Source: Paraphysomonas bandaiensis
Taxonomy: Eukaryota > Protista > Chrysophyceae
DNA: 35,386 nt
Direction of reading: 5' to 3'
NCBI GenBank assembly: GCA_965644295.1
Contig: CBFFRP010000265.1
Span: forward strand, 1 to 35,386
Position numbers and translations under genes: made by a program. This document shows, piece by piece, positions 2,512-16,477 of the stretch. The notes below the pieces were generated by a model. The model saw only the letters and a list, made by a program, of their open reading frames with translations, was not told where the DNA came from and searched no databases. Numbering within the stretch: the stretch's first letter is position 1; each line of letters begins with the position of its first letter.

Positions 2512-4010
2512 ATGGGTCAATTGCAATCAAATCACTTCGATTATGAAACTTATCTTGCTAAAGAAGATGAGAAAGTTCTAAGAACTTTACCATTATCAAC
2601 CCATCATATACATATATTTCATATGATATATAACACTATTAACACTGATAATTATCAATATATAACAATACATCAATGTATTGAATATTTTCATATAAAC
2701 AACACTTTAATCAATCAATCAATATTCAAAGTATTCAATATTGATGATAATGAACAATTATCTTTCTGTGAATTCGGTATATATCTATACATACATATAT
2801 ATATAGAACTAACCCTCTTATTATTACAGCTAGCACAATCTGGCATTTTCTAAGTATCAGTAATGATCATTTAGGTGGAATGATCTATGATTTATATGAT
2901 ATAGAGGGTAATGGACGTATGGAGCCCTCTACAGTCATCTATATGTTAAACTGCATACATGGCTGTATTAACGAACTGCAAGATAATACTATACAAAAAA
3001 CAGTTCATGATATAAGTCGTTCACGTGTAAGATATACACGATATCAATTCATTGGACTGACTAATACATGTACCACTGTACTTGCACCTATAGTGTCCCT
3101 TCATACCCATTTACGTTCAGTTATTGGAGGTTTGAAGTTCTGGCGATCGCTTGAGGCACGTCGTTCATCTGAGAATGATGGACATTTTCTCACAGCACGA
3201 TTTACTGTTGAATTGAGAGAGCAACTAGAGATGCGTGCAATGCATTCGAAACTAGTGAGGCATCTCTCCAAGATTGTTGAGGATGAAGTAAGTGGACGTT
3301 CTATTCGATCTAACCGCTATAGTCCAAAGAAGGTTGAGTTAACAACAGGAAATAAAGGATTGTACTGCACTAGAGGCAAAAGAGCTTTGTGTTGTACACC
3401 GGAAGAGCGCCGCCGTGCTCCTCCTGGTCCTTCCCGTAGCAGTAATCGTCGAAAATATGCCACGAACGATAACGAGTTATATAAGAATGGTCTTTTCAAA
3501 AGTGGACCAAAGCATGCCAAGACTAGAGTTCGCATTCAACAATTGGATAATGCTATTCCAACCGATCAATCCGCATTGTTTGCGACTTCCAATGCGGTTC
3601 GAACTCCCGCCCGAAGTGAAGTGGGAAAAACAATTGCGTATGGCGCAACAAGGATATTTCAATGGTTTTCCAATGGTGGGGATGCGCGAGTTTATTCTTT
3701 AACTAGCAGTGGGACTGCTGTCGGTACCGCAAGCAATAGTTCACAGAGTGGTCTAGAAGCTGTTCAACGTACTCATGATATTGACGAGGTGGACAAACTA
3801 TCGGAATGTAGTGTTGAAAGTGCATTTTCATTTGACCAAGAAGACGGTGGAGAAAGAGACTTTTACGCCCATGCATATGGGAGAGGTTTCATGTCTATGG
3901 ATAATATTCAAACTGATGATAGTGAGTCCACTGATTCACCAGGTGTGGTCTTCTCAGATTGTACACTGAAGTGCTTTAACACTTTAGACAGTGTTGACAA
4001 TGAAAACTAG
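2512..4010 (+). CDS. N-myristoylated EF-hand protein (calcineurin-B/NCS-like N-terminus) with a long disordered tail
   Basis: Exons 2512-2776 and 2830-4010 (53-nt GT-AG intron). Starts MGQLQS (MGxxxS). EF-loop-like segments FNIDDNEQLSFCEF and YDIEGNGRMEPST. Confidence 0.75.
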
Positions 4011-13637: not shown

Positions 13638-16477
13638 CTATTTAATGATCTTGCTGACCACACCGGCGCCAACAGTCTTACCACCTTCGCGAATAGCAAA
13701 CCGAAGTCCGGGGGACATAGCAACTGGACAGATCAGGTTCACTTGGAGTGTAGCATTATCACCGGGAACAACCTGTTACATTCAAGTGAGTGACTGGTAT
13801 CAATTTATTAGTCGTAACATGAACACGTACCATCTCAACCGCTTCAGGAAGGATAACATCTCCTGTAATATCAGATGTGCGGAAGAAAAACTGAGGCCTA
13901 TAGCAATAGCACGTTAAACAAAGAAGAATTCAGAAAAGTAATATGAGTAAAACACACTTCGTCTGGCATCAGTAAAATAGATATCATCCCAACATATCAG
14001 ATAATGAGATTCCTTGAGTTTAATCATCACACGCCATAACAAATGAAACGGCTAAGGTGTATAACGCAAATAATAATTTTAACACGCCAATACCTATAGT
14101 TGCTGAAAAAGGGTGTGTGTCTGCCTCCCTCTTGTTGGGTAAGGACGTAAATCTCAGCCTCAAAATGTGAGTGAGTGGTCACAGTGCCAGGTTGGGCGAC
14201 GATCTATATTTGAAAAATCAATTGTGAAGGGTAGGATCAGTGTGCACACTATACACATATAATACAACATTTACCTGTCCTCTCTTAATATCCTCGCGCT
14301 TTAGACCACGGAGAAGAAGTCCGACGTTATCACCCGCCTGGCCGTAGTCCATGCTCTTCTTGAACATTTCCACGCCTGTTATGCAGACATAAGCGAATGA
14401 AGTAACTGTTCGCAGAGAATATAATAGTAACATGTTCGTGTAAATGTGCATCTAGCCACGGGGCAGAGTCAACCCATATACAAGGGTAACTCTGTACGGA
14501 AGGCAGATACTAAAATATATAATGTTCCTGCACTATCAAGACCCACTCAACTCTAATACATGAGGGATCTCAAGTTTACAGGGTAAAACATATGTAGCAC
14601 GTACAAAACAAAATACTAATATACCTGTCACAGCAGTCTTCTGGGCAGGGACACCAAGTCCTAGAATCTCAATATCAGCTCCCGTCTTGATTGATCCTGT
14701 AGTTGAATGGCATAACAGTTAATCACAAATACTACAACAACTCCGTAGCAAAACATCTTAAAACACAGTATATAACTGGCATCAGTAAATCAATAATCAT
14801 CACAAGGAGTCAGTTAATGAGATTCCTTTACTATAATCATCACTTGCCAGAATAGTACAACCGTTTAACACATAATAAATTTGAAAAAATATGTAGACAG
14901 ATTCCTCAAGACATACACATCTACTCACCTGTTTCAATTCTTCCAGTTGCCACCGTACCACGACCAGATATAGAAAAGATGTCCTCAACAGGCATCAGGA
15001 AAGATTTGTCAACCTCTCTCTGGGGGGTTGGGATAGCATCCTCGACCTAAACAAAAACCACATCATTGATACCAACAAAAAGACCACAAAAATATTATGG
15101 GTATGTGATAAACAGTTATAAATGTGCATCTAGCCACGGGGCAGAGTCAACCCATATACAAGGGTAACTCTGTACGGAAGGCAGATACTAAAATATATAA
15201 TGTTCCTGCACTATCAAGACCCACTCAACTCTAATACATGAGGGATCTCAAGTTTACAGGGTGTAAAAATATATAACATAATCAATTCAGGAATACAATT
15301 TCAGATATTCATACCGCTTTCATGAGATCAATAATGGCTTGTTTGCCGAGTTTCTCATCGCCTCCACTTGCTGCGGCCAGAGCAGATCCCCTATTAATTA
15401 CATTTTAGTTCTGAAATAACGTACGCAACCAATGGATTGCACATTTCGAAATATATATTCAACCAAAACGGACATACACTTTCACAAAATATAATTACAT
15501 GTGCAGTAATATTCATAGCGTAATGCACCCACCTGACGATATGGATATCATCGCCAGGATAGTCGTACTGGCTCAAAAGCTCACGGACTGACAACATATA
15601 ATTCGTTAGAAACAAAATGCAAATATAATAATGTGTCTGTATACTAAAATATAAACCACTAAGCAACTGCTCAAAAAAGAGTACGTTTCATTCCACACAT
15701 ACAGAACACAATCTGTGGTCGGTGAAGAGAGAAGGTTGTTTTCACAGCAGGGCTTTGCTTTAGATACAATTGGGTTCAACATCACCATATTAATACATAT
15801 ATAACATTCGATTATGGTACAAGTATCACCTATACGTTAATAGATTTGTAATAATATCTTACCTTCCATCTCTACTAATTCCAAGAGTTCCTCATCATCC
15901 ACAAGATCTACTTTGTTTAGGAAAACAACTAGAGAAGGAACGCCGACCTGTCTAGCAAGGACGATGTGTTCTCTAGTTTGGGGCATAGGACCATCTTGTG
16001 CCGACACCACAAGAATACCTCCATCCATCTGCAGTTAAGTCAGTACAGAGAATTGATTACTATCATACCAACTACTACACCTGTGCTGCCCCAGTAATCA
16101 TATTCTTCACATAATCAGCATGTCCAGGACAATCCACATGAGCATAATGTCTATTTTCAGTCTCATATTCTACATGAGCTGAATTAATAGTAATTCCACG
16201 TGCTTTTTCTTCGGGGGATTTATCAATATCCTCATATGACATGGCTTTCCCACCACTCATTTCTGATAATACACGTGAAATTCCAGCTGTAAGTGTTGTT
16301 TTTCCATGATCAACATGTCCAATTGTTCCAATATTAACATGTGGTTTATTTCTAACGTAATTACTTAAGCATTTGCTTAAAACTATTAAGGAAATGATTC
16401 GATTAATAAGGGAAAGGAAAAGGAATGAAGTTACCTTGATTTGATGACTTTGATAAACGGAATGCTCTTGCTAGCAT
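13638..16477 (-). CDS. TUFM: Mitochondrial elongation factor Tu (11 exons)
   Basis: Exons 16477-16435, 16382-16081, 16028-15863, 15587-15533, 15390-15315, 15046-14929, 14696-14625, 14375-14275, 14203-14094, 13897-13831, 13772-13638, all with GT-AG introns. Motifs [38 protein letters not shown]. Basic/Ser-rich presequence [12 protein letters not shown]. Confidence 0.96.
13964..14036 (-). ncRNA. Intronic box C/D snoRNA (EF-Tu intron 9)
   Basis: Minus strand: tggcg-t-GTGATGA(C)...aaggaatctcattat-CTGA(D')...GGGATGA(C')...CTGA(D)-tgcca, with a terminal stem. Guide is shared with the intron 6 copy. Confidence 0.85.
14441..14584 (-). ncRNA. Intronic box H/ACA snoRNA (EF-Tu intron 7); 3' pocket fits the 18S site guided by U71/SNORA71 in humans
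   Basis: Hairpin cctgta...tgcagg, H box ACATTA, hairpin gtatctgcc...ggctagatgc, then ACA-ttt. Pockets uuccgu/cccgu fit 18S ACGGG-U-A-ACGG(A/G)G, and aaacuug/ugau fit AUCA-U-U-CAAGUUU (rRNA from memory). Confidence 0.85.
14776..14850 (-). ncRNA. Intronic box C/D snoRNA (EF-Tu intron 6)
   Basis: Minus strand: ctggca-a-GTGATGA(C)...aaggaatctcattaa-CTGA(D')...GTGATGA(C')...CTGA(D)-tgccag. Perfect 6-bp terminal stem and four consensus boxes. Confidence 0.9.
15119..15262 (-). ncRNA. Intronic box H/ACA snoRNA (EF-Tu intron 5), identical to the intron 7 copy
   Basis: 144 bp identical to 14441-14584; same hairpin-H-hairpin-ACA layout. Confidence 0.85.
15629..15787 (-). ncRNA. Candidate intronic box H/ACA snoRNA (EF-Tu intron 3)
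   Basis: Two hairpins (tggtga...tcaccg; tctgtatg...tatacaga) followed by ACA-tta. Both pockets fit neighbouring sites in the LSU segment AGAUACCACAAAAGGUGUUGGUUCA (from memory). H box is not canonical. Confidence 0.6.

Follow-up and report, generated by a model that had tools for sequence, protein, structure and literature searches.

A mitochondrial-type EF-Tu gene as host of two families of predicted intronic snoRNAs in the chrysophyte Paraphysomonas bandaiensis

In animals and yeast, intronic small nucleolar RNAs (snoRNAs) lie one to an intron and depend on splicing for their processing, and mammalian intronic snoRNAs of the box C/D class have a positional optimum roughly 70-80 nucleotides (nt) upstream of the 3' splice site. 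To our knowledge, snoRNA organization is poorly described beyond animals, fungi and plants. The subject of this work is the gene for an organellar-type EF-Tu of the marine protist Paraphysomonas bandaiensis, located on contig CBFFRP010000265.1 of assembly GCA_965644295.1; the window that we analyzed is the stretch from position 1 to 35,386 of the forward strand of that contig (35,386 nt). The conclusion that this minus-strand gene also serves as a snoRNA host gene, with four predicted guide RNAs in its introns, is well supported. A described case with a comparable host comes from primates, where the intron that carries a copy of SNORA58 belongs to the nuclear gene MRPL3, which encodes a mitochondrial ribosomal protein; the same work explains the choice of snoRNA hosts in general by broad expression (PMC3511168).

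Our preferred reading, to which we assign a probability of roughly 85%, is that the EF-Tu gene hosts two sense-strand snoRNA families whose guides would address the large-subunit (LSU) and the small-subunit (SSU) ribosomal RNA (rRNA), that introns 7 and 9 are their ancestral places, and that the snoRNAs hitch-hike on their host, an association that is not in itself evidence of regulatory coupling.

The EF-Tu gene and its two snoRNA families

The reading frame of the gene, obtained by in-frame translation of the exon model, is open through all 414 codons across the 11 exons. Searched exon by exon, single exons match the Pfam domains GTP_EFTU, D2 and D3, and they match solved bacterial and mitochondrial EF-Tu structures in the PDB equally well. 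Ahead of the conserved EF-Tu start are approximately 25 basic, hydroxylated and acid-free residues, an extension that looks like a mitochondrial presequence. The gene carries the sole EF-Tu G-domain in the 62.6-Mb assembly. Because of the presequence-like N-terminus, the domain matches and the uniqueness of this G-domain, we infer that the product is a mitochondrial EF-Tu, which agrees with the identification made in an earlier, sequence-only reading of the window. Introns 1 to 10 measure 52, 52, 275, 142, 268, 232, 249, 71, 196 and 58 nt. The size classes described in that reading (52-71 nt for introns 1, 2, 8 and 10; 196-275 nt for introns 3, 5, 6, 7 and 9) are correct, and the only fault of its list is the omission of intron 4 (142 nt). 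Intron 4 is without a snoRNA-like element (fold z 0.16), and as a single-copy sequence in the genome it was ruled out as an introner-type element. The coordinates of the gene and of the features discussed below are collected in Table 1.

Table 1. Positions in the window of the EF-Tu gene, its larger introns and the elements that they contain
Feature	Position	Strand	Description or basis
Nuclear organellar-type (predicted mitochondrial) EF-Tu gene	13638..16477	-	11 exons, 10 GT-AG introns, 414 codons; exon model
Intron 3	15588-15862	-	275 nt
Conserved element of intron 3 (earlier proposed as H/ACA)	15628..15790	-	blocks in common with intron 3 of L025
Intron 5	15047-15314	-	268 nt; second H/ACA copy
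Predicted box H/ACA snoRNA, second copy (intron 5)	15119..15262	-	100% identity over 144 nt, flanks dissimilar
Intron 6	14697-14928	-	232 nt; C/D copy A
Predicted box C/D snoRNA, copy A (intron 6)	14775..14851	-	boxes, 6-bp terminal stem, 13-nt D' guide to LSU rRNA
Intron 7	14376-14624	-	249 nt; H/ACA copy
Predicted box H/ACA snoRNA (intron 7)	14441..14584	-	fold z -4.9, orthologues, covariation, ancestral position
Intron 9	13898-14093	-	196 nt; C/D copy B
Predicted box C/D snoRNA, copy B (intron 9)	13962..14038	-	78% identical to copy A, 12-nt D' guide, ancestral position

Both members of the C/D family have the sequence GUGAUGA, an internal CUGA, an internal UGAUGA-like box and a terminal CUGA (in copy A these are C GUGAUGA, D' CUGA, C' UGAUGA and D CUGA), enclosed by terminal stems of 6 and 5 base pairs, and with 78% identity they are paralogous. 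The D' guide can form uninterrupted Watson-Crick pairs with the LSU rRNA of this organism over 13 nt in copy A and 12 nt in copy B, and among the introns of this gene rRNA matches of at least 11 nt occur in introns 6 and 9 only. In nine copies from seven species-level loci the guide ends one nucleotide before D'. With the target nucleotide assigned by the D'+5 rule, the predicted site of 2'-O-methylation should be the LSU rRNA uridine immediately 5' of GAGAUUCC, at position 622 of G000:C545 (minus strand). In the Rfam consensus alignments this nucleotide falls between the sites that SNORD30 and SNORD79 guide in human, 1 nt to the 3' side of the former and 4 nt to the 5' side of the latter. This position is U here and C in yeast and human, and it is not known to be modified in either of those two. 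No copies of the C/D family were found outside the EF-Tu gene in the assembly. Similarity of the flanks is partly kept between introns 6 and 9, which fits an origin of the pair by DNA duplication. The full box set, the terminal stems and the rRNA-complementary guide bear out the earlier proposal of sense-strand C/D elements in introns 6 and 9, and with them the proposal that guides for cytosolic rRNA are encoded here holds for at least one family.

The element shared by introns 5 and 7 has the H/ACA architecture of a hairpin, a hinge with ACAUUA, a second hairpin and an ACA followed by 3-4 nt. Its minimum free energy fold has a z of -4.9, and none of 200 shuffles folded as well. The same architecture recurs in six orthologues, among which the four pocket strands are nearly invariant and all four stems change in sequence yet still pair. 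In the alignment of these sequences the proportion of paired cells is 97%, compared with 75% for shuffles and approximately 40% for controls with the partner slid; compensatory double changes occur at 25 of 34 pairs, which none of 500 shuffles attained. As this alignment had been fitted to the model it leans toward the structure, and the effect is nonetheless large. No member of the family was found elsewhere in the 62.6-Mb assembly. The fold, the boxes, the orthologues and the covariation thus uphold the assignment of introns 5 and 7 to sense-strand H/ACA snoRNAs.

For the H/ACA targets we used a search that required one common register across all orthologous guides and contiguous pairing. 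In all lineages the candidate target U is 12-15 nt away from the H or ACA box, compared with the 14-16 nt by which an H/ACA pocket is usually defined. For hairpin 1 the best site is SSU U289 and for hairpin 2 it is SSU U351 (numbered along the SSU gene at G000:C653:891-2686), with the next-best well behind. The pockets most plausibly target these two uridines in the 5' domain of SSU rRNA, which we offer as candidates only. A first target search with free registers and mismatches was rejected, as reversed and shuffled rRNA scored equally often. The hairpin-2 target that was guessed first was also discarded: its genome-wide search counts were at control level, and its recurrent match is a dispersed repeat, not an RNA gene. 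This repeat is approximately 91% identical over at least 200 bp, has at least 8 copies and is without an Rfam match (loci L027-L030, at G000:C55:10900-11300, C132:252100-252500, C319:24530-24930 and C445:88550-88950). The H/ACA covariance model also has a weak match within the window at 2934-3048 (minus strand; 26 bits, rough E of 0.001), which is probably a false positive, with no clear ACA tail in its fold.

Several observations weigh against the assignment of both families as rRNA guides. With Rfam, no family was above threshold for the C/D copies (the best, SNORD79, reached 28.5 bits against a cut-off of 47) and no H/ACA family matched the element of introns 5 and 7 at E up to 10. For the D-box guides, which differ between copies A and B and among relatives, only weak GU-rich or AU-rich rRNA matches and no convincing target were found. 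In some relatives the H and ACA boxes vary, with a 7-nt H box and AUA or AAA in place of ACA. The score of U289 was reached by 23 of 200 shuffles and that of U351 by 5 of 200, which makes these sites weak to moderate. Finally, approximately 15% of the LSU rRNA (model positions ~326-818 and ~1449-1491) is absent from the assembly, so that a better guide target may exist. The ribosomal DNA is assembled as fragments (G000:C525, C543, C545, C516 and C653); an LSU fragment (model 818-1347) immediately precedes a complete SSU gene on C525, an order that is either a misassembly or a rearranged unit.

Related EF-Tu genes and the history of the introns

Metagenome contigs were scanned with a pattern consisting of the C box, a gap, the guide and D', which carries no EF-Tu information. 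The scan returned nine loci, in which EF-Tu was located by tblastn, and later comparisons of loci were made exon by exon. In five of the nine (L017, L019, L021, L022 and L023) the snoRNA lies inside an EF-Tu gene, always in the equivalent of intron 9, between the counterparts of exons 9 and 10; in L021 the match is present there in two tandem copies. Three of the remaining four loci were rejected as chance matches inside one open reading frame family sampled three times, and the fourth is L016. A protein search with exon 2, used only for choosing related loci, returned mostly EF-Tu fragments of approximately 80% identity and led to the closest relative, L025, with 90% amino acid identity in EF-Tu, whose intron 9 holds the same C/D snoRNA with a variant C box. 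The terminal stems of the C/D orthologues differ in sequence and are still paired. Orthologues of the H/ACA snoRNA are found in the intron-7 equivalent of L017, L019, L021 (two copies), L022, L023 and L025, that is, in every locus covering this intron apart from L036-L039. The association of host and guides spans loci that are 68-90% identical in EF-Tu protein, and at least nine relatives from environmental samples have it. Because the C/D and H/ACA snoRNAs are conserved in the EF-Tu introns of relatives, four of the five elements of the sequence-only reading (introns 5, 6, 7 and 9) show the box conservation in orthologous introns whose lack that reading had named as evidence against itself.

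The EF-Tu introns of L036/L037 and L038/L039 contain none of the motifs and give no covariance-model match. By pairwise EF-Tu identity these loci are not outliers, and for this reason loss of the snoRNAs is the simpler reading of them, as judged without a rooted tree. They have introns 2, 3, 4, 5, 7, 9 and 10 in common with the gene studied here; as intron-rich loci without these snoRNAs, L036 and L038 keep seven or eight introns. Intron 7 of one of these related genes (L038:6344-6932) is nearly all microsatellite of the CCTTA type. In the intron-poor loci (L025, L017, L019, L021, L022 and L023) internal introns are confined to positions 3, 7 and 9, exactly the snoRNA-bearing ones, and small 5' introns are additionally present in L025 and L021. 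This pattern fits a resistance of snoRNA-bearing introns to loss, in a small sample and with no tree.

Among the loci compared, introns 6 and 8 are the only ones specific to this genome. A gain of introns 4, 5 and 10 in this lineage was considered and rejected because L036 and L038 share their positions. Judged from the loci compared, introns 7 and 9 are the ancestral snoRNA positions, and introns 5 and 6 received their copies afterwards by duplication inside the gene. The one-per-intron layout with several sense-strand snoRNAs that had been described holds for this genome, and both this layout and introns with multiple snoRNAs occur within the group. In L021 (2745-5440, minus strand) each of the EF-Tu introns contains several snoRNAs, with two tandem copies of each family, and introns 3 and 7 of that locus also repeat a further C/D-like element.

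How the H/ACA copy reached intron 5 can be read in two ways. The intron itself is old, and the copy fits either retroposition or gene conversion between older copies. RNA-mediated retroposition, as opposed to DNA duplication with gene conversion, would account for an identity of 100% over exactly 144 nt that begins 1-2 nt before the 5' stem, stops 4 nt past ACA and gives way to unrelated sequence downstream, so that both ends of the identity fall within 1-4 nt of the predicted RNA ends; it also suits an intron-5 position at which no snoRNA was found in any relative compared. Set against this, the intron-5 copy has no poly(A) tract or target-site duplication, the 20 nt upstream of the element are roughly 80% alike in introns 5 and 7, as expected from an older DNA duplication homogenized by gene conversion, and the flank similarity of the C/D pair is typical of DNA duplication. 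We regard retroposition as possible and somewhat doubtful.

Intron 3 is the exception among the snoRNA candidates of this gene. L025 alone of the related loci has matching sequence in its intron 3, where a 16-nt block is identical and two shorter ones are shared. One conserved block contains ACA, and the element is single copy in the genome. The fold is no better than that of shuffles (z 0.43), no canonical H box and no ANANNA were found in the putative hinge, no consensus structure with L025 was found, and Rfam gave no match; the earlier H/ACA assignment is therefore not upheld for this intron. In the relatives, intron 3 carries a different snoRNA, of the C/D class with two conserved guides, in L017, L021 (two copies), L025, L026 (three copies) and L040. 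No copy of it was found in the EF-Tu gene of this genome. Its orthologue is instead present as at least 45 tandem copies with a period of 163 bp at G000:C373:332078-339469 (minus strand; array loci L031-L034), with guides that contain UUCUACACC and AAGUCA, and each 163-bp unit resembles a short exon with an adjoining GTAAGT...CAG intron in which the snoRNA lies. Because the orthologue lies in EF-Tu intron 3 of five related loci, this C/D snoRNA appears to have departed from the EF-Tu gene in the present lineage. The five intronic snoRNAs first proposed are accordingly reduced to four, in introns 5, 6, 7 and 9, and these are two families of two copies each rather than separate kinds.

Hitch-hiking, co-transcription and coupling

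The mechanism that we propose begins with a C/D RNA of approximately 75 nt, from introns 9 and 6, that would guide the 2'-O-methylation of a single uridine in cytosolic LSU rRNA, and an H/ACA RNA of approximately 145 nt, from introns 7 and 5, whose most plausible targets are two uridines of the SSU rRNA 5' domain. After splicing and debranching, exonucleases would trim the introns down to the mature RNAs, as happens in animals and yeast. A splicing-dependent release fits the locus because the elements are in sense orientation, one per intron, with 3' ends 64-78 nt from the 3' splice sites; for the C/D copies the 3' end lies 78 nt (copy A) and 64 nt (copy B) upstream. The additional copies in introns 5 and 6 would double the snoRNA output per transcript. 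The snoRNAs would hitch-hike on a mitochondrial gene that is constitutively expressed, and inertia would maintain the link.

An alternative is that EF-Tu gene and snoRNAs form an old package kept by selection, in which the gene is the sole source of the guides and the snoRNAs protect their introns from loss. Under such an arrangement EF-Tu transcription would set the level of the guided modifications, the gene being the obligatory only source of the guides, and the retention of exactly introns 3, 7 and 9 in intron-poor relatives can be cited for the protection of introns. The link between host and guests is breakable, since the snoRNAs are missing from some related loci and here one family now lies outside the gene. 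We think such a package unlikely.

The sequence-only reading went further in one direction and suggested a coupling of mitochondrial translation to the modification of cytosolic rRNA. Spelled out, EF-Tu transcription would set the levels of particular rRNA modifications, and selection would keep guides and host together so that mitochondrial and cytosolic translation are coordinated. That neither family has a genomic source besides the EF-Tu gene, and that the association persists across loci of 68-90% identity in EF-Tu protein, would be expected of such coupling. However, these snoRNAs are absent from L036/L037 and L038/L039 although the intron positions are retained there, a tandem array now houses the intron-3 C/D family in this genome, and published comparative work finds broad expression to be all that a host gene requires (PMC3511168). 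The layout gives co-transcription only, so that we could not sustain the suggestion and consider functional coupling quite improbable. The host-guest link is best read as no evidence for regulatory coupling, co-transcription being inherent in the layout.

It is hardly credible that the conserved intronic elements act in cis on the splicing or structure of the EF-Tu pre-mRNA, or that their boxes arose by chance because the introns are AT-rich, even though no Rfam family is above threshold and the intron 3 element may be of that kind, for the full C/D architecture with its 12-13 nt rRNA complement occurs in nine copies from seven species-level loci, the C/D terminal stems vary in sequence but pair, the H/ACA element covaries in four helices with its pocket strands constant, and chance matches would not recur in orthologous introns.

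The locus places three processes side by side: long-term retention, an increase in dosage and escape to a tandem array. Retention here means that the guides stay in particular introns of one host, introns which in the intron-poor relatives are the sole surviving internal ones. The locus is a clean example of a snoRNA host backed by comparison with relatives, and the analysis predicts a directly testable 2'-O-methylated uridine in LSU rRNA. It is an ordinary kind of snoRNA host gene, well supported as such, and it leaves the understanding of host genes unchanged.

Comparison with described snoRNAs and hosts

Human TUFM was considered as a host of SNORA30 and rejected, as a gene list places SNORA30 beside SRCAP, and we found no link in the literature between TUFM and any snoRNA. 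The two EF-Tu-hosted families also differ from the array on C373 of this same genome: there the snoRNA forms tandem repeats, whereas the EF-Tu-hosted families multiplied by copying into other introns and have two copies each inside a protein-coding gene.

The C/D family shares with SNORD79 (RF00152) and SNORD30 (RF00088) an antisense element with GGAAUCUC that addresses the same stretch of LSU rRNA. It differs from them in its Rfam scores of 28.5 and 23.9, which fall far short of the respective gathering cut-offs of 47 and 40, and in its predicted target, which is shifted by 4 nt and 1 nt.

With the intronic snoRNAs of animals and yeast the locus has in common the sense orientation, the GT-AG introns, one snoRNA per intron in this genome, a distance of 64-78 nt from the 3' splice site and a housekeeping translation gene as host. 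In contrast, the EF-Tu host would serve mitochondrial and not cytosolic translation, the processing proposed here is by analogy, and some relatives hold at least two snoRNAs per intron (L021). The case of SNORA58 in MRPL3 (PMC3511168) is alike in that a nuclear gene of the mitochondrial translation apparatus houses a guide for cytosolic rRNA; that case is a recent gain of a single copy, whereas the EF-Tu gene hosts two families that are shared with relatives down to 68% EF-Tu identity.

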